Positions 2,259-45,582 of a DNA stretch of 64,000 nt are shown here, piece after piece. A program made the translations under genes and the position numbers. Numbering within the stretch: the first letter of the stretch is position 1; each line of letters begins with the position of its first letter. The stretch spans positions 1 to 64,000 of the forward strand of contig JAIVFI010000009.1 in NCBI GenBank assembly GCA_025558095.1, written 5' to 3'. This DNA comes from Hyaloraphidium curvatum SAG 235-1. Taxonomy: Eukaryota; Fungi; Monoblepharomycota. The notes under the pieces were generated by a model. The model saw only the letters and a list, made by a program, of their open reading frames with translations. It was not told the origin of the DNA and did not search any database.

Positions 2259-3314
2259 ATGGAACGCAACGTTGACACGCGATTGCCCCCGCCGAAACGG
2301 GCCGCGGGGCGGCGGGCCTCGGATCCGGCGGGGCTCGGCGGGGTGTGGGCGCACGACGTCGCCTTCGTCCGAGCGCTGCTCCCGCTGGCCCCCGAGGCCG
2401 CCAGGTGGGACAGCGGGTTCTCGGAAGGGGCGGCGGGCGCGGAAGAGTGGGCGGGGCGCGAGGCCGGCGGAACGCGCCCGTGCGGCGCGGGTGCGGGGGC
2501 TCGGTCGCCCGTTCCCCGTGGCGGACGGGTCAACGGCTGCGGGGCTGCGCTGCCCCGGGACCTCTTTGCCGCCCTCGCCATGCCGGTACCCCCACGGCGT
2601 GCTTCCGAGCCTGAACTGGCCTCGGGCCGCCGCTCCGAGGCCCGCCTGGCCGCCGCGCCGCCGCACACCCTCTCGCCCGCGCCGCACCGCCTGCCGCACC
2701 CCTCCCTGCGAATCGACACAATAACTGCAAGCGTACCCACTCCATCTCCCTCCCCCGACCCCTCATCCTCCTCTTTCGACCCCTCCTATCTCGGCGATTC
2801 ATCGCCCTCCTCCCTGGACGCCGCCGACGGTGACTCGCCCCGTCCCTTCGGGCTCCGATTCGCCTCCTCCTCCCTCCCCGCCGATCTGCTGGCGTTGGAC
2901 CTGCGGTTTGCATGCCTGCGCATGCCCCGCCCCTCCCGGGCACGGACGGGTCCGGGCCAGATCCGGCCTCCGGAACGCAGCAGGGTACGGTTCGCTTCCG
3001 GGGCCCCCGCGATCATCCCCACCTGGTCTAAACTCGACTACGACCGTGGCCTCGAGCCGCACGAGGCCGCCCGGGTGTTAAGCGAGGGCGCGCGGAGCTT
3101 GGAACCCGGGCAGCAGGGCGTCGGCCTGCTGGCGGGGGAGGCCGGGGGCGGGCTCCAGGTCGCCCACAGGCTCGTCAACGTGCCCGGGTGCGGATGCACC
3201 GTCGACGCGAGCCGGATGCCGGACCTGCGGCGGTACTGGGCCAAGGGGCAGACGCTTTGCAAGGACGGGAGGAGGCCGGGCAGGGACGGGCACGGGGAGG
3301 CGGCCGAGGGCTAG
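2259..3314 (+). CDS. Low-complexity protein with a PP1-docking module (neurabin/spinophilin/Bni4-like)
   Basis: SRVRFASGAPAIIPTWSKLDYDR (~2980-3045) matches the RVxF..TxSxxDYDR pattern; boundaries uncertain. Confidence 0.55.
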   Translation: MERNVDTRLPPPKRAAGRRASDPAGLGGVWAHDVAFVRALLPLAPEAARWDSGFSEGAAGAEEWAGREAGGTRPCGAGAGARSPVPRGGRVNGCGAALPRDLFAALAMPVPPRRASEPELASGRRSEARLAAAPPHTLSPAPHRLPHPSLRIDTITASVPTPSPSPDPSSSSFDPSYLGDSSPSSLDAADGDSPRPFGLRFASSSLPADLLALDLRFACLRMPRPSRARTGPGQIRPPERSRVRFASGAPAIIPTWSKLDYDRGLEPHEAARVLSEGARSLEPGQQGVGLLAGEAGGGLQVAHRLVNVPGCGCTVDASRMPDLRRYWAKGQTLCKDGRRPGRDGHGEAAEG

Positions 3315-3502
3315 GGACGACATCAAGGGCCTTGATGCAGCCGGAGGAACTGTCTGTCATAGATTTGCCCTCATTTTGAACGGGAAGGATCGCATCAGCT
3401 CTACGAGGGGGCGCCGCCGGGCAGCGTCGCTTCGGTCGGAGCTCTCATAGATTGAAGTGGAGCCCGCCCGAGTTTGAACGAGGCAATCTACACGAATAGA
3501 CC

Positions 3503-5182
3503 ATGAACGCGACCACGCGCCGCCGCCTCCTCCTCGGCCTGGGAGCCGCGCTCGTAGCGCTGCCCGCCGCCTTTGTCCTTTTGCGCGACGAGGGGAGCGC
3601 GGTGGGGCCGGACGGCGTCCCGTGGCGCGCCGAGCCCGTCGCGTTCGAGCCGCCGCCGCGCGAGCGCGAGTCGTTCTGGGCGACCGACGGCGCGGAGAGG
3701 GCCCCCGAGGACGACGCGGAGCCGGCCGAGCCCGCGGCTGCCCCGCCCCCTCCGCCTCCCGCGGACCCGGTGCCCGGCGCCCCCCCCTCCCCCGCCGCCC
3801 CGCCCGCCATCCCGCCGCACCTCGCCGACCTCGCGCCGCTCTTCACTTCGCCCCCCCCCCCCTGCCGCATCGCGCTCGTCAGGCAGCCCGGCGCAGAGTC
3901 CCTCTTCCGCAACTGCAGCCTGCCGGCAAACTTCACCCGCGACGACCTCTCGCCACAGGAGCTGTACGACCTCGCGCACATCATGCCCCGCCGCCTGAAG
4001 GACGCCGCGCACCGGCTGGGCGCCGTGGTCCCCGAGCAGGACGCCGACGTGCTTTTGGTCGACGACGAGCGCGAGCAGCGCTGCTTCATGGGCGACCAGG
4101 CCAACAAGGCAGACATGCGCCGGGCCGGCGAGCTGCTCGCCGCCCGCCTCAAGGGCCAAGGCCCCCCCGCCATCCTCGCCATCGACTACCCCCTGTGGAA
4201 CCGCGACGCCATCCGCGACACCCCGCGCGCCTTCCGCTTCGCCGTCGAGGAGCTGCAGGTCCCCCGCGAGACCGAGAAATCGGGCCGCCACATCTTCCTC
4301 CCGTACTACGCTCCCGACAACCCGCACGCCGCCGGCCGCGACCCCGAGGCGAAGGACGGCCACGACATCGCGCTGCTCGCCGCCTGCGGGCAGGAAGGCG
4401 ACGAGGTCGGCGCCCGCTGGGGCGGCAAGAAGCGCCGGCGGGAGCTCATTGCCGGCCTGTGGCGCGCCGCCAACGGCTCGTCCCGCGCCGCGGTGCACTG
4501 CCGGTGCTACCGCGAGTGCCCCGCCAACGCCACCCAGCCGGGCGTCGCGGCGCCGCTGGCCTACCTCCCGTTCCCGGAGCTGCAGAAGCTCTATGCCGAC
4601 AGCACCTTCTGCCCCGTCCCCGCCGGCGACACCCTCTCCTCACGGCGCCTCTCGGACGTCATGGTCTCGGGCTGCATCCCGGTCTTCATCGGCCCTTGGT
4701 TCCACTCCATGCCGTGGCACCCGCTCATCCGCTACGGCGACTTTGCCGTCTTCATCGACATCAAGGCCGACCACGACCGCCCCGCGCGGCGGCGGCGGCT
4801 CCTCCGCCGCCGGTCGCCCCCCGCAGGCGGCCGCCTGCACCGCCGCGAAGCTTCGCCGGGACCAAAGTACCGCCTCGACCCCCCCGTGTGGCGCGTGCCG
4901 ACCGTCGATCACGTGCTCCCCGTGCTCCTCACCATCCCCCCCGCGCGCGTGGCCGAGCTGAAGCGCGGCGTCCTCGCACACGCGAGGTACTTCCGCGGCT
5001 CTCCGTTCCCGCCCGACGTCGCGGGGTGGAAGGAAGCGCCGCCGGCCGAGTGGCCCGGACCGAAAGGAAACTACGCGCACGAGTGGGCCATCGCGGCGGC
5101 GTGCACGCTGCTGGACAAGGCGGGGGAGGGGTGGAAGGGGTGGGCCGAGAGGGCGAGGCCTCTGCTGCAGCAGGGACGGTGA
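3503..5182 (+). CDS. Exostosin-family (GT47) glycosyltransferase, type II membrane protein
   Basis: N-terminal TM, Pro-rich stem, YADSTFCPVPAGDTLSSRRLSDVMVSGCIPVFI; intronless, strong GC3 bias. Confidence 0.9.
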   Translation: MNATTRRRLLLGLGAALVALPAAFVLLRDEGSAVGPDGVPWRAEPVAFEPPPRERESFWATDGAERAPEDDAEPAEPAAAPPPPPPADPVPGAPPSPAAPPAIPPHLADLAPLFTSPPPPCRIALVRQPGAESLFRNCSLPANFTRDDLSPQELYDLAHIMPRRLKDAAHRLGAVVPEQDADVLLVDDEREQRCFMGDQANKADMRRAGELLAARLKGQGPPAILAIDYPLWNRDAIRDTPRAFRFAVEELQVPRETEKSGRHIFLPYYAPDNPHAAGRDPEAKDGHDIALLAACGQEGDEVGARWGGKKRRRELIAGLWRAANGSSRAAVHCRCYRECPANATQPGVAAPLAYLPFPELQKLYADSTFCPVPAGDTLSSRRLSDVMVSGCIPVFIGPWFHSMPWHPLIRYGDFAVFIDIKADHDRPARRRRLLRRRSPPAGGRLHRREASPGPKYRLDPPVWRVPTVDHVLPVLLTIPPARVAELKRGVLAHARYFRGSPFPPDVAGWKEAPPAEWPGPKGNYAHEWAIAAACTLLDKAGEGWKGWAERARPLLQQGR

Positions 5183-5492
5183 AGATGGCCGTGCGGGTGG
5201 GACGGAAGGCGAGCGTGCCGGCCATTTACATTGCTTTGGACGATGGAATCCGTCGCGGTGCGGGTTGCCGGATCGTCCGTTCCCGTGCGTGTGCCGGACC
5301 TGCCCCTTCTTCGCACTACGCGAGGTACGGAATGCAGGCCATCGCACCGAGCCATTGCCGTAGCGCCAACTATGGCCAGCGTCTCCCGGGTGCCGGTCCC
5401 TCAAAAGGACGGGGCCGTGAGTCGTCGGGTCCAGCCAGCCAGGGGACGCCAGCCCGAACGAGGAATCGAGCAACGCCACCCCCCACGCCGCG

Positions 5493-6204
5493 ATGCGCGC
5501 CCCTTTTTTCCTCGCCGCCCTATCAGCGGCCTTTGCGCTGGTCGGCGGCGCTCCCGCGTGGGTCCCGGTGGGCGGAACCGCGGGGAGGAAGCTGACGGTC
5601 CCCTATCCCCAGCGACCTCCGCGGCCTTGGCGAGCGCGTGGTGTTCGCCCGGAGCTGCTCCGAATGCGACCCTGCGGCATACTGGTGGGCCATCCTCCAC
5701 CCCCCCCTCCACCCCCGTCTTGCCCGTCTGACGCCCGCGCCCCCCACCCCCCCGCCCATTCGGCGTAGCGAGTTCGCCCACCCCTCCGCTCCCGCCGACG
5801 CCGTCGCCTGCGTCACCCACCGCACCTCCCGCTCCCTCATGCGGCGGTACTGTGCCGGCACCTGGACCACCCAGCCCCTGGGGCCGGGCCTGCGCTGCGC
5901 TGGTTCGGGCGGCGGGAGCTACATGGCCAGCGAGGGGACCGAGGCGGACGTGCCGACCTACGCTGACCAATGCAAGGACTACTGCGACGGGGATACGGGC
6001 AGCGCGACGGATGTGGTGGCGGAGGTGCGGCTGAACGATTTCGTGGGTCCGCCGCGCTCCCCGCCGCGGCGATCGGACTGACGGCCGACGCCGGTGCAGG
6101 GCCTCATCTGCTGCTTCTGCACCGCCGCATCGAGCTGCACGCCCGAGTCTGCGCCGTTCTTCAACGCGTCGATCGCCTACGTGAACGCCGGGGGCTGCAA
6201 CTGA
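5493..6204 (+). CDS. Small secreted Cys-rich protein, paralog 1 (3 introns)
   Basis: Signal peptide MRAPFFLAALSAAFALVGG; spliced exons give FARSCSECDPAAYCEF..CKDYCDG..ICCFCTAASSC..GGCN*. Confidence 0.75.
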
Positions 6205-6620
6205 GCCGCAACGCGTCGCCGGCAGGTGGGGTCGCCGATGTACATAGGCTGGCCGAGAAAATGCCGCGGCATCCTTCGGTGTATGCATATGGATGGTCTG
6301 TCGCCTCGGCAGATGTGGAACCGAAGCTCGTCCACGGCTTCGCGTCGCCCTCCGTGTTGGAACGGCCGCGCAGGGCTGTGCCCTCGGAACACGGATGCGA
6401 ACGCCTCCTGCGGGCGCTGTTTGCCCAAGGTGCGATGCGATGGAACCATACGGGTACCTAGATCGCTCCCGTTTGTGATCGCACCGCCAGACGGTGCTCG
6501 GCCTTGGCTCCGCATGCGGCCGGTCCCTCAAGTGGGTCGTCTCGGCTCAGCCAGTAGGACGCGACGCACGGCCACCTGGCAGGACACTCCACCGGGATCT
6601 CCGACCGCCCCGCGGTGAAG

Positions 6621-7345
6621 ATGCGCGCGTTCCTGCTCGTCGCCGCCCTCGGGGCGTGCTTCGCGCTGGCCGGCGGGGTTCCGGCGCCGTGGGTTCCGGC
6701 GGGGGGATCCGCGGGCGGCGGGCCGCGCTGATCTCCGTTGCGCTCCGCACCAGGGACCGCAGCGCCCTGGTCGCCGGCGGAGAGACCGTTCTGTTCGCCC
6801 GGAGCTGCGAGGCGTGCGACCCCGAGGCATATTGGTGCGCTGCCCGCCCGCCCTCTGAGGCCCCTCTGATACCCCGCCGCTCGGCAGCGAGTTCACCCAC
6901 CCCTCGGCCCCCGCAGACCACGTCGCCTGCGTCACCATCCCCACCTTCCGCTCCCTCTTCCGTCGCTACTACTCCGCCTGGACTGCGCAGACGCTCGGCG
7001 TGGGCCAGCGGTGCACAGGCGCGGGGAAGGGAATCTACCTCGGCGACGGGGTCCCCGAGGCCGACGTGCCCAACTTTGCCAACCAGTGCAGGAACCTCTG
7101 CGATGACGTCACGGGGAGCGCGCCGGGGTTGGTGGCGAAGGTGCGGAGGATGGGTCGGTCGTGCCGGAGGCGCGCCGCGTACGGCCGGGCTGACGGTCTG
7201 TACCACAACGACAGGCCACCGTGTGCTGCTATTGCTCGACAGCGTCGACGTGCACGATCGAGTCGGTGCCGCAGTTCAGCGTGTCATATGTCGCAACCGG
7301 GTGCTCCGGAGCTTCGCGCCTGGCCGATGCGAATTGCGCCATAGT
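6621..7345 (+). CDS. Small secreted Cys-rich protein, paralog 2 (tandem duplicate; 3' end uncertain)
   Basis: MRAFLLVAALGACFALAGG; FARSCEACDPEAYCEF..CRNLCDD..VCCYCSTASTC; first two introns at the same positions as in paralog 1. Confidence 0.7.
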
Positions 7346-7594
7346 ATTTGGATCCTGTTTCGACACATTGCTGTGGGCCTGGGCGCTATTTCACATGATG
7401 GTCTGGTTCCGCAAGTGCGCGGAGGCGTCGGGACCGCCTGCCGCGCGCAGCGCTCGTCCACGTCCGGACCGCATTAGCCCCAGCATTCCGTCCACTGTCA
7501 TTCGTCTTCCTCGCCGTGCCAAATCCCGCACCGATCGACGGTCGGGTGGTTCACGGCTTTTCCGGCAGATCCACGCTTTGCCACCCGGCCCGGT

Positions 7595-9271
7595 TTGGCT
7601 CCCGTTCCGTCCAAACATACCGCCATAAAGTGCCCCCCGGGAGCGGCCGGCCGGTGCGGGATCCCGGCAATGGCTGCAGCGGGAATGGAAGCGCTTCCAC
7701 CGCGGCACGAGGACGCCGGCGCGGGCGGGGATCCCGCGGAGGACGGGGCGCGGGGTGGGGCGGTCGCCGGCGTGTCGCCCGAAGACGGAGCGGCGCCGCG
7801 GGCCAGTTCCGAGTCTGGACGGACGCCGACTATTTGTGGCGACCCGGAAAAGGTGGACACTGACGTTCACGATGAGCCGACAACGACTGTTTGCGCCGTC
7901 GGCACGGAGAAGGAGAACTTGGAGAAAGAGCGACACGGGAAGGACGACGTCGACGAACTGGAAGTCGATGCCGCGGCAAAGGTCAAGGACCTGGAAGGCA
8001 AACCGGAACCCGAAGCCGCTGAGCCCGAAGTGCCCCCGCACTTGCGCCCGGACACTTCCACGCGAGCGTGGCTTGTGCTCTTCGCCGCCTGGAGCGCGCA
8101 GCTCTGGTCCGCGGCCTTTGTCGCATCCTGGGGCGTGTTCCAGCGGACGCTGATCGCCGAGGGCGCCTTCGACGGGGCCACCAACTTCCAGCTCTCATTC
8201 ATCGGCACCGTCGTCTTTTCCGTCAGCGTCGTCGCGGCCCTCTTCGTCGGCCCTCTCGCGGACCGTTTCCCCCCGGCCGCGCTGGCCTGCCTCGGCGGCC
8301 TGCTCTGTTCCGGCTCCCTCCTGGCTGCCTCGTTCGCCTCCCAGCTCTGGCAGATGTACCTCGCCTCGGCGCTCAACGGCCTGGGCGGCTCGCTGCTCTT
8401 CGTGCCGGGCACCGTGGCCACGAACCAGTGGTTCTCGCGCCGCCGCGGGCTGGCCATGGGCATCGTCTCTTCCGGCACCGGCATCGGCACGCTGATGGTC
8501 ACTCCGATCTCGCAGGCCTGCATCAACGCCGCGGGGTGGCGGTTCGCGCTGCGGATCCTCGCCGCCATCATCGCCGGCTGGATGTGCCCCGCGGCGCTGC
8601 TCCTGCGGAGGAGGGTGGCCGCGGTGCCGCGTAAGGGCCCGCTCATCACATTCGTCTACTTCCGAAACTGGACCTTTTCCCTCGTCTTTTCCTCCATCGC
8701 CATCATCATGTTCGTCTTCTTCCTCGTGCAAGCGTACGTGCCGCTCATGCTCTACGACGGCGGCTACCCGAACTCGGTCGGTGTCGCGGTCGTGAGCGCG
8801 TACTCCGCCGTTCTCGCCGTGGGCCGGATCGTCGGCGGCTTCCTCGCCTCCCGCGCCGGCGAGCTCAACCTCTTCTGCCTCGCCTGCTTCGTGCCCTGCG
8901 CCATGTCCCTCATCTGGATGTCGTCGCCCACCAACCTCGGCGTCACGGCCTCGGTGACCATGGTCTGGGCCTTCTTCTGCGGTGCCCCTCTCGTCACGAT
9001 GCCGCTCATCTGCGCCCAGGAGTTCGGCCTGCACCGCCTCGGTTCCGTGGTGGGCGTCATGACGCTATGCTTCTGGGCCGGCGAAACGTGGGGCAACGCC
9101 GTGCTGGGCGCCATCGTCGACGCGCACACGTACTACGTTGACGGGCAGAGGGCGGGCGCGGACTACAGGCCCATGCTGGCGTTCTCGGCGGCCATGTGGT
9201 TCCTGGGAGGCTGCGTGATATCGGGGCTGAGGTGGAGGAAGGTGGGGTGGAAACTCCTCGCGAGGATCTAG
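7595..9271 (+). CDS. MFS transporter, monocarboxylate porter (Mch-like)
   Basis: About 12 TM helices, PDTSTRAWLV, QWFSRRRGLAMGIVSSGTGIG; the start may be ATG 7670. Confidence 0.9.
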   Translation: MAPVPSKHTAIKCPPGAAGRCGIPAMAAAGMEALPPRHEDAGAGGDPAEDGARGGAVAGVSPEDGAAPRASSESGRTPTICGDPEKVDTDVHDEPTTTVCAVGTEKENLEKERHGKDDVDELEVDAAAKVKDLEGKPEPEAAEPEVPPHLRPDTSTRAWLVLFAAWSAQLWSAAFVASWGVFQRTLIAEGAFDGATNFQLSFIGTVVFSVSVVAALFVGPLADRFPPAALACLGGLLCSGSLLAASFASQLWQMYLASALNGLGGSLLFVPGTVATNQWFSRRRGLAMGIVSSGTGIGTLMVTPISQACINAAGWRFALRILAAIIAGWMCPAALLLRRRVAAVPRKGPLITFVYFRNWTFSLVFSSIAIIMFVFFLVQAYVPLMLYDGGYPNSVGVAVVSAYSAVLAVGRIVGGFLASRAGELNLFCLACFVPCAMSLIWMSSPTNLGVTASVTMVWAFFCGAPLVTMPLICAQEFGLHRLGSVVGVMTLCFWAGETWGNAVLGAIVDAHTYYVDGQRAGADYRPMLAFSAAMWFLGGCVISGLRWRKVGWKLLARI

Positions 9272-41115: not shown

Positions 41116-42562
41116 CTATATCATGCGGATCCTGGCGCTCCCGGTGATGTACAAGCGCTTCCTTGCGGTATCATACGCGAGGGCCGCCGGCAGGACGAAC
41201 TGCGTCGCCGTTGTCGACGGCGGCAGCCCGTCACATGCGAAGCCCTGGGTTCCCGTGCCCGCGAACGTGGAAGCGATCCCGTCCGGGGCTACGGCCCTGA
41301 TCAGGTTGCCCGAGCTGGACCCGACGTAGAGCGTCCCTCCGGAATCCTTGACGGCGCTGTAGGGGGTGATGACCGAGGCAGCGCTGGCCGGGCCGCCGTC
41401 ACCTGCGTTGGAGGCCGATCCGTTGCCCATGAAAACCGTAGCAGCTGCTCCCGAGATGGGCTGCATGAAAATCTTATGGGAAGACATCGCCATCATGAGG
41501 AGGTTGTCTTGGTCGAACATTGTCAGGAAGTCCGGGAGGACGGGGGCAACGAAGGAGCCGATTGTCGAGATGACGCCGCCCGACACTTTTCGCACCACTC
41601 GTGCACTGGATTGGGAAATGTAGACAGCTCCATCCGCCCCCACGGCCAACCCCTTTGGACTTCCGACCTGGGCAGCGGTCGGGACGTTTCCGTCCCCCGC
41701 CACGCCGGAAGTGCCGTTGCCGGCGAAGGTGGTGATGATTCCGGTCGTAAGAACGACCTTCCTGATGCGATTGGAGCCGAAGTCGGCGATGAGAAGGTCG
41801 CCCGACGAGTCGAATACGCATTGATGCGGATTGTTGATCTTCTCAAGCGTCGCCTGGCCCCCGTCGCCACAAAAGCCTGAGGTGCCGTTCCCGGCAAAGG
41901 TGGTGATGATGCCCGTCGTAACGTCCACGCGGCGCACGACGTGGTTGGTCGTGCTGAAGAAGACGTTGCCGGACGGATCCAGGCGGATTCCCCTCGTGGT
42001 GATGTTCGCCTCTGTCGCCAGCCCGCCGTCGCCCGTGTATCCCTGGGCTCCTGTGCCGGCAAACGTTGACACGATGGGGGGCGTGACGTATCTGGATGTG
42101 GGCGCGGTCAGCGTCGGGGAGCGGGGGCTGCTGGAGGCCCCACCTCCTATACAGGTGCCCGGAAAATGCTGTACTGGACGCAGGCGACGTGCCCTTCGGG
42201 GGATCGATGCGCGCCTCAGGTTCCTCTTCCAACTTAGCCGTTGGTGCCCTTGTGCTATGTGAGCAAACGAGAAAGGACACCGGTGGCGGCAAAGATATGA
42301 ACTCCGGGCCGGCGCCGAAAAGTCCATCCGGCGCGGGCGCAAATCCCTCCTCATCGACGACGGAGCGACGGGAGGACACGGCGTGGCGAGCGTACGAGTT
42401 CTTTTCCCGGGCTGGCGGCACAGTTGAACTGAGCGGAAACTGGGGAGGTTGGGGGACGAGAAGAAGACGCCGGGCAGGAATGATCCAATTGAGGAGAAGG
42501 ATAGTGGAACTGATCTTCCAATGCCCAAGTGATCGCTCGTACCCCTCCAGCACCTGAAGCAA
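41116..42562 (-). CDS. NHL-repeat beta-propeller protein (bacterial/teneurin-like repeats); 5' exons uncertain
   Basis: Repeated ITTFAGNGTSGFxGDGGxATxA, IADFGSNRIRKV; putative propeptide ending LYRR. Confidence 0.82.
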
Positions 42563-42817
42563 ATGCGCAAGAAGCCGTCACCGCACGATCGGGCACGTGC
42601 TCTCCACCCGCGAACCCGCTGTGTTCCTCAATCTGATCAGGCGACGGAACTTTCGACGATTGCTCGCCCCCTCGAGTCGGCGCCTCAGCTCGCCTTGACG
42701 CTTCAGTCCACCGATGGATCAAAGGCAGATGAGAATGTATCAATTCAACCAATGGCATCCGTCTATCCCAAATCAGTTCCCCATCCAAAAGCGTCCTCCC
42801 AACTTCACCATCCCCTC

Positions 42818-44968
42818 TCACCTCTCCGCCAGCGCCTGGTGCACCAAACTGACCACCACGCTCCCCTCCCCCACCCCGCTCGCCACCCTCTTCACGCTCG
42901 CGCTGCGGACGTCCCCCACGGCAAACACCCCCGGCGCCGCGGTCTCGAACAGCCGCGGGGGGCGGTCCAGAGGCCAGCCCGCCGAGGCGAGCTCCTCGGG
43001 GGTGAGGTGGAACCCGGTCTTGACGAAGCCCTGGGGGTCGAGGACGATGCGGGAGCAGCCCTTGAGCCACTCGCTGTTCCGGACGGATGGAGTAAGATGC
43101 TATCAGCGACGGGACAGGGTACGGGACCCACGTGTTGCTGGTCGCGCCGGCCATGCTGAAGACGTGCCGCACGGGCTTGGTGACGAGCTGTGGGGGGGAC
43201 ACTGCCGAGTCCTTCCACGTCACGGAGGCCAGGTGGCCGTCAGAATCCCCTGTCAGCTCGACGATCTCGGATTTGACGTGCAGCGAGATGTTGGGCGTGG
43301 ATTCGATCCGGTCGATCAGGTACTTGCTCATGGTCTCGCTCTGCGGTCGGCAGGTCAGCGGAATCCGGGGGACACGCAAGCCGGGGACCCACCAGCGCGC
43401 GCCGGACGAGGATGTACACGTGCGCCGAGGTCTGGCTGAGGAACACGGCCGCCTGGCCCGCCGAGTTGCCGCCGCCGACGATGATAACCTCCTCGGTCCG
43501 GCAGAGCTGGGCTTCGATGTAGGTGGCGCCGTAGTACACGCCTGCGGGCCCGGCTGGTCAAGCAATCGAAAGCGCGGCGCCAGCGGGGACGACCCACCCC
43601 GGCTCTCGAACTGCGCCAGGTTCGGCAGCCCCAGCTTGCGGTACTTTGCCCCCGTCGCGATGACCACCGACTTGGCCTTGACGGCCTTCTCGCCCTCCCT
43701 GTCGGCGAAGGAGACCGCGTACGGGAAGGAGGAGCAGTCGATGCCTTTGACGGCCGTGGCCACGCGCACCATGGCACCGAACTTCTCGGCCTGGGTGAGG
43801 GCGCGCGCCGAGAGGGCCTGGCCGGAGATGCCGGTGGGGAAGCCGAGGTCTGGCGGGCAACAATGTCAGCAAGCGGATGGAGTTCGGACGGCCCGTCCAT
43901 CGACCCACAGTTTTCGATCTTGGAGCTGGTCCCAGCCTGCCCTCCCGGCACGTTGGATTCGAGCACCACGGTGTCCAGCCCCTCACTAGCCGCGTACACG
44001 GCCGCGGCCAGTCCCGACGGCCCCGCCCCCACCACGATCACGTCGTGCACGCCCTCGGGGTCCAGGGTCGGGTTGAGCTCCAGGCACTCGGCGAGCTCCG
44101 CGTCGCTGGGGTTGCGGAGAACGTTGGTGCCGCGGCAGATGGCGACGGGGAAGTCGGCGATGGAGACGTGGAAGCGCTCCAGGAGGGTCTCGATCAGGGG
44201 GTCCTCATCGACGTCGATGTCTAGAACGGGGGAGGAAAGAGAGTCAGATCACGAGATCAACCGCCAGCGGCGCAGCCACCAACACTTGTAGGGGTGACCA
44301 GTGCGCGACAGGAACCCCTTGAGCCTCAGCGTGTCTGAGTTCCACTTGCTCCCGATGAGCAGCACGTCCCCGACGCTCCTCATGATCAGGCTGACCCTCC
44401 GCAGGATAAAGGCCCGCATGATGACGTCCGACAGTTCGCTGTCCGTCCGCACGAGCTGCTGCAGGTCTGCTGCCGACATGGTGATGGCCGTGCCGGCCTC
44501 GGTGCCGTGGATGTCGACCAGCGAGCGGCGGCCGGCCAGCATGTTGACCTCGCCCGTGAACTGGCCCGGGCCGTGCTCCACGATTACCACGTCGCCCTTG
44601 CCGTCCTCGGGCGCCGTCACGGTGATCTTGCCCGACTCGATGACGAGGAAGGGAACGTCGGCCGCGCCGGCGGTGATCAGCGCGTCGCCTGGCTTGAAGG
44701 CGACCTGGCGGGCGCCGGGACGGGCGCGGATGCGGGCGATCTGGGCCGGGCTCAGTCTGGGGAACACCTGCTCGCGCCGCTCCAGCGCGGGGTCGGCGGA
44801 AGCGCCTGGCCGCTTCACGGGGGGCATCTCGGGCACTTCGGGCACGGAGGGCGGCACTGCGGTCGCAGCGGCGGCCATCGCGGCGCGGAACGGGCGGTAA
44901 GAAACTCGGGCGGCGGGTCGGAGGAGCGGGAGGACGGCGGCCGTGGCAGCAAGCCTCAGGAGGAGCAT
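42818..44968 (-). CDS. cNMP-binding domain plus thioredoxin-reductase-like FAD oxidoreductase (no CXXC), 5 introns, presequence-like N-terminus
   Basis: FPRLSPAQIARI, GQFTGEVNML, LSDVIMRAFILRR, DVIVVGAGPSGLAAAVYAASEGL, GGQAGTSSKIENYLGFPTGISG, GVYYGATYIEAQLC, VGGGNSAGQAA, FAVGDVRSASVKRVASGVGEG. Confidence 0.93.
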
Positions 44969-45102
44969 GCGATGCTCGCGCAGCGATCGGAGTTGTCCCG
45001 CGGGGTGGCTGTGCGTTCCGATCTTCCGGCCGGGTTTCCAAATGGTTTGAAACGGCCGCTGCTCTTCCGCATTCCACTCGTTTCCACCGCTCCCTCGACG
45101 CT
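44969..45102. promoter_or_regulatory. Putative bidirectional promoter with an imperfect palindrome at 45027-45058
   Basis: 134 bp between divergent ATGs; CGGCC-GG-GTTT-C-CAAA-TGG-TTTG-AAAC-GGCCG. Confidence 0.45.
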
Positions 45103-45582
45103 ATGGCCTCGTGCACTCACACCGACTCGATCAAGTGGGACGTGAAGAGGCGGGTCTCGCCCAAGAGGGCCCGAAACGCCGCCCAACCCCCGCTCCCGCC
45201 GGCCGCAGCCACACTCACGGGAAGCGCGAATGCGAGGACTGCGTCAAGATCGGGGCCCGCTGGGTGCATCTCCGCAAGTGCATGACGTGCGGACACGTCG
45301 GTGGGCACCGGCGGAGCCGGAATCGCGTCCGCTTGCGTGGACTGTCTCCCCGTGCTTATCTCCGGCCCCGTTTCGTCGACGACAGCGTGCTGCGACTCGT
45401 CGCCCAACAAGCACGCGACCAAGCACTCTTATGCCAAGGAGCACCCGATCGTCATGTCGTACGAGCCGGGGGAGCAGTGGCTCTGGTGCTATGGTGGGCA
45501 GGACCGTCGCCGTTGGGGGTGAATGTGAGCTGACGCGACGCGCCGTCGGGCAGTTGACGAGGCAATGATGGAATACGAGTGA
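45103..45582 (+). CDS. Stand-alone bacterial-type UBP zinc-finger protein (~91 aa; 3 introns, the first GC-AG)
   Basis: Removing introns 45150-45208, 45301-45385 and 45494-45553 gives MASCTH..CEDCVKIGARWVHLRKCMTCGHVACCDSSPNKHATKH..HPIVMSYEPGEQWLWCYVDE. Confidence 0.92.

Follow-up and report, generated by a model that had tools for sequence, protein, structure and literature searches.

A divergent reductase and zinc finger gene pair of apparent prokaryotic operon origin in the fungus Hyaloraphidium curvatum

Background

Kominek et al. reportedly described, in 2019, a bacterial siderophore operon acquired by Wickerhamiella/Starmerella yeasts. Here we analyse a gene pair of related character in Hyaloraphidium curvatum SAG 235-1, located within the first 64,000 nucleotides of contig JAIVFI010000009.1 of assembly GCA_025558095.1; this whole stretch is referred to below as the window. 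One gene encodes a flavoprotein that combines a cyclic nucleotide-binding (cNMP) domain with a thioredoxin reductase (TrxR)-like module, and the other a stand-alone zinc finger of the ubiquitin-protease type (ZnF-UBP); the products are called the reductase and the finger. As with the siderophore operon, prokaryotic neighbours are kept adjacent and expressed in a fungus, but the Hyaloraphidium case comprises only two genes, which are divergent, lie in an early-diverging host and would have gained their introns after transfer. We lean towards the view that a bacterial two-gene module reached a Hyaloraphidium ancestor in a single transfer, with its genes linked, was fully domesticated there, and acts as a unit.

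The closest described relatives of the reductase form a prokaryotic family of cNMP-binding/FAD-dependent oxidoreductases (FAD, flavin adenine dinucleotide), which carries the JGI label 'thioredoxin reductase (NADPH)', NADPH being the reduced form of nicotinamide adenine dinucleotide phosphate. The fungal protein has the same three-domain architecture, the same GVYYGATxxEAQLC sequence and the same five Cys, and resembles about half of the family in having Asn at the glutaredoxin site. It differs from the prokaryotic members in the five introns of its gene, in the 92% GC content of third codon positions in its coding sequence (67% GC for the window), and in a 50-residue presequence-like extension. 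With TrxB (TIGR01292), AhpF and NTRC the reductase shares the FAD and NADPH domains and the GxGxxG, GGGNSA and GD motifs, and in AhpF and NTRC, likewise, a thioredoxin-fold domain is fused ahead of the TrxR module. Unlike these enzymes it has no CxxC in either the NADPH or the thioredoxin-fold domain, and it has an added cNMP domain.

The nearest solved structure for the finger is a bacterial homologue of 102 aa, PDB 2IDA, which is filed as 'hypothetical protein' with no function in the entry and shares the pattern WVHLR...CGHVGCCD...HATRH...HP...WCY. The ZnF-UBP (BUZ) domains of USP5, USP16, USP49 and HDAC6 belong to the same Pfam family and have the same zinc-ligand pattern, whereas the finger stands alone and lacks the carboxylate-binding Arg, and its similarity to them is marginal (E 1e-5 or weaker). 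In USP5 and HDAC6, this Arg, part of the C-G-R loop, binds the carboxylate at the ubiquitin C-terminus. Already known are the GenBank annotation of the fungal reductase, the automatic annotation of its prokaryotic family and the structure of the bacterial finger. A literature search revealed no paper on the function of the reductase family, on the pairing, on the function of RPA1320/2IDA, or on horizontal gene transfer in Hyaloraphidium. A survey of prokaryotic treble-clef fingers by Burroughs, Iyer and Aravind from 2011 may mention ZnF-UBP contexts.

Results and discussion

Gene structure and expression of the pair

An initial annotation, made from the letters of the window, had recognised two divergent genes with ATGs 134 bp apart and had counted five and three spliceosomal introns, from which it argued that the locus was not bacterial contamination. 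The start codons lie at 44968-44966 (-) and 45103 (+), in agreement with this, and the gene models are given in Table 1, that of the reductase coming from a six-frame translation and a reading of the splice sites. Two public runs were used to examine splicing: X1, from the same organism, which gives spliced (RNA) contigs, and X2, which gives short DNA contigs. All eight introns of the two genes are removed in X1 contigs, and a single X1 contig of 2146 nt, lying on 42724-45134, skips exactly the five reductase introns. Contigs from X2 run without gaps across 44070-44273 and 45242-45452 and retain reductase intron 1 and finger intron 2, so that the DNA contains these two introns and the RNA does not. 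The high third-position GC of the reductase gene shows no sign of recent arrival. Contamination or an assembly artefact is ruled out by the introns, the spliced RNA contigs, the intron-keeping DNA contigs and the host-like composition, and both genes are intron-bearing, expressed genes of the host genome.

The spliced reductase product is letter for letter the same as protein P0270 (GenBank KAI9026704.1), a Hyaloraphidium sequence from an 849-kb contig that GenBank labels 'cyclic nucleotide-regulated FAD-dependent pyridine nucleotide-disulfide oxidoreductase'. The reductase gene is present in a single copy in the 31.9-Mb genome; the other zf-UBP matches of the genome lie elsewhere, several of them in much longer open frames. 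In all searches the finger was queried exon by exon, with its exons as separate rows in alignments, and the reductase was queried through P0270 and exon references. Reductase exons were joined only to establish identity with P0270, and the exon DNA of both genes was concatenated for GC counts.

Two joints were observed for finger intron 1. The major one, 45147>45207 (shiftable by 2), has a depth of 3868 and gives a GC..AG intron with its donor at 45150, while the minor one, 45134>45209, has a depth of 13 and gives a GT..AG intron with its donor 15 nt upstream, at 45135. The minor splice form remains in frame and encodes 86 aa instead of 91 aa, lacking KWDVK and having Asn for Ser at the junction. 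The same 2146-nt X1 contig is unbroken from 44284 to 45134, passing through the spacer into finger exon 1 and ending exactly at the GT donor, which indicates that the 5' ends of the two transcripts overlap or abut; as a de Bruijn contig, it shows neither single molecules nor transcription starts. Beside the 3' end of the reductase gene, at 41116-42570 (-), the window contains a long open frame with TFAGNGTSG..GDGG repeats resembling NHL/beta-propeller repeats.

Table 1. Coordinates of the gene pair and of features within it, numbered from the first letter of the window
Feature	Position	Strand	Description
Reductase gene	42818..44968	-	6 exons; 620 aa; cNMP-binding / glutaredoxin-like / TrxR-like flavoprotein
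Reductase exons	44284-44968, 43909-44220, 43598-43849, 43393-43541, 43132-43340, 42818-43073	-	Stop included
Reductase introns	43074-43131, 43341-43392, 43542-43597, 43850-43908, 44221-44283	-	5, all GT..AG; absent from X1 contig
Reductase intron 1	44221..44283	-	63 nt, GT..AG; codon and phase match the sole intron of the L081 orthologue
Reductase transcript, 3' untranslated end	42724..42817	-	Extent of X1 contig, which begins behind adaptor letters
N-terminal extension	44819..44968	-	Residues 1-50; Arg/Ala/Leu-rich, presequence-like; predicted local distance difference test (pLDDT) score <50; second Met at residue 31
cNMP-binding domain	44441..44704	-	Residues 89-176; Pfam PF00027; cassette G-E...R kept (FTGEVNMLAGRRS)
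Glutaredoxin-like fold	44081..44365	-	Residues 202-275; split by intron 1; beta-alpha-beta-alpha-beta-beta-alpha order in AlphaFold2 model
CATC-equivalent site	43501..43536	-	Residues 419-430; YYGATYIEAQLC; reads G-A-T-Y, then invariant Cys430
Spacer	44969..45102	.	134 bp; presumed bidirectional promoter/5' untranslated region; transcribed throughout in run X1
ZnF-UBP gene	45103..45582	+	4 exons, 3 introns; 91 aa, stand-alone; RNA joints
ZnF-UBP exons	45103-45149, 45209-45300, 45386-45493, 45554-45582	+	Stop included
ZnF-UBP introns	45150-45208 (GC..AG), 45301-45385, 45494-45553	+	Joints in X1
Cys-Cys-Asp of the finger	45388..45396	+	Second Cys and Asp sit where ubiquitin-binding ZnF-UBPs have Gly-Arg

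A second eukaryotic pair and the origin of the locus

In a collection of 5.8 billion proteins, only P0270 and one other sequence, L081, were of eukaryote type above the prokaryotic matches, which were at most 60% identical; for the reductase, these two stand against at least 8000 prokaryotic candidates. L081 is a 40-kb Logan contig from run SRR26194948 with Rpb2, CTLH and RING genes, spliceosomal introns and 53% GC. It is eukaryotic, and its Rpb2 fragment shows 81-90% identity to the Hyaloraphidium counterpart. The pair on L081 is also arranged head to head, across a spacer of 213 bp. A comparison of L081 with the window revealed no similarity beyond the pair, and no conserved motif or alignable sequence was found between the 134-bp and 213-bp spacers. 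The sole intron of the L081 reductase gene coincides in codon and phase with intron 1 in the window, between the T and the AC of a Tyr codon that follows HPY(K/R), and finger intron 1 is likewise at the same position and phase in both, being GT..AG in L081 and GC..AG in the window. The remaining introns of the two pairs differ. The L081 finger gene has at least four introns and includes a micro-exon of 13 nt, at about 3888-3900 (-), that encodes part of the invariant W-V-H-L-R.

The initial annotation had proposed that the two genes were transferred together and have stayed together since, and the L081 pair speaks for this: the head-to-head arrangement recurs there with no other synteny in the compared regions, and each gene has an intron position common to both pairs, all of which favours one transfer of the linked pair and fits selection for its linkage. 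A finger-reductase operon that was already linked would have entered, once, an ancestor that Hyaloraphidium shares with the L081 organism. One of the genes would then have been inverted, turning the operon into a divergent pair with a shared control region, and introns would have been gained after transfer, with each gene acquiring one or more of them ahead of the divergence of the two lineages. The N-terminal extension, similar to a mitochondrial presequence, would have been added to the reductase in Hyaloraphidium.

Quick trees were calculated from the C-terminal 405 residues of the reductase. P0270 and L081 form one clade (SH-aLRT 100) on a long stem of about 0.5 changes per site, and this clade falls outside a 39-row prokaryote clade (99) of Acidobacteriota, Nitrospirota, Binatota and Nitrososphaeria. 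The 65-aa core of the finger is 55-71% identical to that of its prokaryotic operon partners. Its best match, L082, is the partner of one of the nearest tree relatives of the reductase, by a margin too small to name a donor. The named best matches of a finger profile are mostly Myxococcota (Kofleriaceae, Polyangiaceae and Myxococcaceae); since the profile was seeded with L082 and L087, this ranking is not independent evidence for a donor.

Linkage of the pair in prokaryotes

The prokaryote sample contained one genome per species and yielded 80 loci, 73 of them with a full reductase open reading frame (ORF); their products share 41-53% identity with reductase exon 1. The full-length ORFs are 51-57% identical to P0270 over residues 66-619. 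Of the 80 loci, 38 have a finger within the fetched flank. In nearly all of these it follows the reductase immediately on the same strand, with a gap of 0-18 bp, in line with the statement of the initial annotation that the two are neighbours in bacterial operons; at two loci it is directly upstream and at two it is divergent. A divergent pair with the fungus-like orientation is found in L062 and L065, which are near-identical and come from Nitrospirota: the genes lie at 4856-5206 (-) and 5953-7632 (+), about 750 bp apart. The metagenomic proteins nearer the eukaryotic sequences (the subclade with P0300, P0294 and P0280) have the finger directly upstream and co-directional, as seen in L082, L087 and the P0294 contig, and this order is the fungal order with one gene inverted.

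A small zf-UBP ORF was present elsewhere in 27 of the 35 genomes that have a reductase and no adjacent finger; taken with the 38 linked loci, about nine in ten reductase carriers own a finger. Within one phylum of 101 sampled genomes, the finger occurred in 18 and the reductase in five, with the finger in four of the five reductase carriers versus 14 of the other 96 (Fisher p 0.003). The reductase is also present in Nitrososphaeria, the ammonia-oxidising archaea (L023, L033, L034, L059 and L061), whose sequences are nested among bacterial ones in the tree. The finger is adjacent at none of these archaeal loci, and zf-UBP ORFs occur elsewhere in three of the four archaeal genomes searched.

The genes flanking the pair are variable. 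The 132 flanking ORFs included MOSC/YiiM proteins (7), zinc-dependent alcohol dehydrogenases (6), short-chain dehydrogenases/reductases (4) and cyclases (4), and there were also aldo-keto reductases, nucleotide cyclases and DsbA-like proteins. No third gene was constant among them, and no iron- or metal-handling genes recurred. A histidine kinase with a cNMP domain, which the initial annotation had named as a frequent neighbour, could not be upheld as a third partner, as HATPase_c, HisKA and cNMP_binding all fell outside the 25 commonest families of these ORFs. Two long ORFs considered as possible reductase-finger fusions, L030 and L044, were rejected, one being a C-terminal extension without a domain and the other reading through into a neighbouring MacB/FtsX gene. 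A finger fusion was seen only in L098, at 2285-3709 (+), from a genome of the Acidobacteriota phylum, where a 475-aa ORF encodes an LtrA membrane protein (PF06772, 278 bits) with a zf-UBP at its C-terminus. Neither protein of the pair has an NCBIfam family of its own. A role in anti-phage defence was also considered and set aside: against the PADLOC models P0270 gave only weak Rossmann-motif/cNMP matches (E 2e-4 or weaker), and the finger gave none.

The reductase

An AlphaFold2 model of P0270, built from a 99-sequence alignment, has a mean pLDDT of 85.9 and a predicted TM score of 0.83, and divides into four parts: a disordered segment (residues 1-50), a cNMP-binding domain (about 60-195), a thioredoxin/glutaredoxin-like domain (202-275) and a TrxR-type FAD/NADPH module (286-620). 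The added Arg-rich N-terminus described by the initial annotation is real, in that prokaryotic homologues align only from about residue 45-66 and have no such extension. Residues 1-44 contain five Arg/Lys and one Asp/Glu, and the extension looks like a mitochondrial presequence in both its composition and its modelled disorder. The second Met, at residue 31, may permit the dual targeting that the initial annotation had suggested.

The fusion of a cNMP domain to a TrxB-like module, also noted at the outset, is borne out by Pfam: PF00027 matches exon 1 with 38.6 bits (cut-off 27.5), and the remaining exons match TrxR/Pyr_redox pieces. In the cNMP cassette, F137, G139 and E140 are invariant in 99 sequences and R147 nearly so; the residue following the cassette Arg is R/P, not S/T, in most family members. 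Several homologues of the reductase also have PF00462 (Glutaredoxin) matches. At the glutaredoxin active-site position, 210, the fungus has Asn (SKWNSD) and 51% of prokaryotic members have Cys. No CxxC is present in this carrier domain, where prokaryotes hold at most one Cys.

In a HMMER alignment to TrxR 9vv4, the positions of the canonical CATC are occupied by G-A-T-Y within GVYYGATYIEAQLC. The initial annotation had read this replacement correctly as YYGAT..EAQLC and had treated it as a feature of the fungal protein, which does not hold: the consensus of the whole prokaryotic family at this site is GVYYGATFxEAQLC, with C430 invariant, and on the alignment the loss of CATC is family-wide and not a fungal change. 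Among about 100 homologues, 94-100% retain each of the cysteines C257, C274, C371, C430 and C542, and the dinucleotide motifs G293/G295/G298, G439-G440-N442-S443-A444 and G589-D590 are invariant.

The best Foldseek E-value for the model was obtained with AhpF 4O5Q, over 481 columns, and its TrxR module superimposes on the FR-state TrxR structures 5MH4, 1F6M, 3R9U and 5VT3 with TM scores of 0.84-0.89 and a root-mean-square deviation of about 3 A. The module matches true TrxRs with E 1e-40 and TrxR-type ferredoxin reductases with E 1e-9 to 1e-11. Its TIGR01292 score of 200.6 bits is below the cut-off of 343.45, and with no CxxC the reductase is, by its sequence, not a member of the thioredoxin-disulfide reductases.

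The zinc finger protein

The finger had been described at first as a UBP-type zinc finger of about 91 aa with no deubiquitinase, and this holds: the 91-aa product ends at 45582, with no deubiquitinase, deacetylase or BRAP-type part attached, and its exon 3 alone matches Pfam zf-UBP (PF02148) with 28.4 bits against a cut-off of 22.7 (39 bits for a bacterial orthologue). Prokaryotic orthologues are of similar length, 87-108 aa. Structure 2IDA matches L087 with E 1.7e-30 and the finger profile with E 4.8e-35. The invariant ligands, C13, H15, C31, C34, C47, C50, C55, H63, H67, H73 and C88, are all present in the fungal exons.

The residues C55, C56 and D57 do not vary among 32 sequences, and across a set of 144 their conservation is 95% or higher. 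Alignments place them in a loop, C-C-D-S-S-P-N, that contains no basic residue, compared with the C-G-R loop of USP49, USP16 and HDAC6. With no Arg in its pocket loop, the finger belongs to the ZnF-UBP fold family but does not qualify as a binder of the ubiquitin tail. A Gly-Gly end is found in neither of the two proteins.

Possible functions of the pair

The linkage was kept amid changed surroundings, the prokaryotic operons are tight, and the two genes co-occur among prokaryotes, which together make a functional partnership likely, and we infer with some confidence that the two proteins act as one unit. The reductase would be a flavoenzyme dependent on NADPH and FAD, following the plan of AhpF or NTRC and lacking a redox disulfide, and its CAP-type cyclic-nucleotide domain would provide the regulatory input. 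The initial annotation had suggested the finger as redox substrate or thiol relay, for which the sequences offer hints in the invariant extra Cys-Asp of the finger and in the five near-invariant Cys of the reductase. A tentative proposal, well short of being probable, is that the three-zinc finger is the dedicated client of the flavoprotein and is reduced at its invariant Cys-Asp, either as a thiol, as a mixed disulfide or at a bound metal. Electrons might reach the finger by way of the near-invariant cysteines of the reductase. The fuller version, that the pair is a cyclic-nucleotide-gated relay from NADPH through flavin to the finger, and that the prokaryotic ZnF-UBP is a redox- or metal-active client with the pocket Cys-Asp as its reactive site and not a ubiquitin reader, is unlikely.

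Several observations weigh against the reading that we prefer. The interaction of the proteins and the flow of electrons between them are both deduced from linkage, and the basis for co-expression is the contigs of one run. The dependence is one-sided, as the finger turns up about three times as often as the reductase in the phylum sampled (18 versus 5 of 101 genomes), and lone fingers have no constant neighbour across 14 loci, so the finger cannot only be a client of the reductase. No natural fusion of reductase and finger was found. Cys is missing from the glutaredoxin active-site position in about half of the prokaryotic reductases and in both eukaryotic proteins, and the L081 reductase ORF, as called, shows no presequence. 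As to the donor, the eukaryote clade joins four metagenomic subclades in a polytomy, a Kofleriaceae sequence being part of one of the four, and no donor can be named; the core of the finger does not discriminate donors, its identity being uncorrelated with reductase similarity (Spearman 0.06).

It is possible, though rather doubtful, that the finger is instead a regulatory or adaptor subunit that grips a peptide terminus or tail of the reductase or of a third protein and thereby localises or gates the flavoenzyme, with a small molecule or another protein as the electron acceptor. ZnF-UBPs of known function do bind peptide tails (USP5, HDAC6 and USP16 were matched in the PDB), the finger also occurs without the reductase, including its one fusion to LtrA, and the flanks often contain oxidoreductases of small molecules (MOSC/YiiM, zinc-dependent alcohol dehydrogenase, short-chain dehydrogenase/reductase and aldo-keto reductase). 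However, the Arg that would hold a carboxylate is gone, with an invariant Cys-Asp in its place, neither protein offers a Gly-Gly end, and there is no constant third gene nearby. Tight operon coupling would also suit a finger acting as a metalloprotein electron carrier or metal shuttle, for iron or another redox metal, with the flavoprotein as its NADPH-dependent reductase. Such an arrangement would parallel rubredoxin reductase with rubredoxin, or the TrxR-type ferredoxin-NADP+ reductases with ferredoxin, which have a TrxR fold without CxxC as the reductase does and are matched by it in the PDB, and the 13 invariant Cys/His plus Asp of the finger are one or two more than three zinc sites require. 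We consider a carrier improbable all the same, given that the reductase is far closer to true TrxRs than to these enzymes, that the 2IDA entry names no more than a hypothetical protein, and that iron- or metal-handling genes do not recur nearby.

The remaining alternative concerns history and not function: the genes may have arrived separately, or have been inherited vertically from ancient times with massive loss elsewhere, their adjacency being a coincidence of rearrangement. The unplaced donor clade, the long eukaryote stem and a fungal orientation unlike the usual bacterial one would all be compatible with this. It would, however, have to account for the same adjacency and orientation in L081 with no other synteny in the compared regions, for an intron position common to both eukaryotes in each gene, for partners that share operons in prokaryotes, and for two eukaryote sequences against thousands of prokaryotic ones, and it is therefore very hard to credit. 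A single transfer of the linked pair is the most economical history.

Conclusions

The comparisons suggest that this is an operon-derived, horizontally transferred gene pair in a fungus, composed of domain families already known. It provides a clean case in which a prokaryotic operon pair appears to survive in an early-diverging fungus (Monoblepharomycota) as a divergent, intron-bearing, expressed pair, and its linkage in two lineages with nothing else in common across the compared regions is independent evolutionary evidence of mutual need. It also points to a widespread, uncharacterised prokaryotic module, represented by thousands of sequences from Acidobacteriota, Myxococcota-like bacteria, Nitrospirota, Binatota and Nitrososphaeria, in which a stand-alone ZnF-UBP accompanies a TrxR-like flavoprotein whose disulfide has been lost and to which a cNMP sensor and a glutaredoxin-like domain have been added.

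Should the relay exist, it would be the first function for prokaryotic ZnF-UBPs, and the ubiquitin-tail pocket of eukaryotes may then derive, by recruitment, from such a Cys-Asp site. The presequence-bearing fungal copy would in that case carry the chemistry to mitochondria, under the control of cAMP/cGMP. Understanding the pair would tell what ZnF-UBP domains did before ubiquitin.

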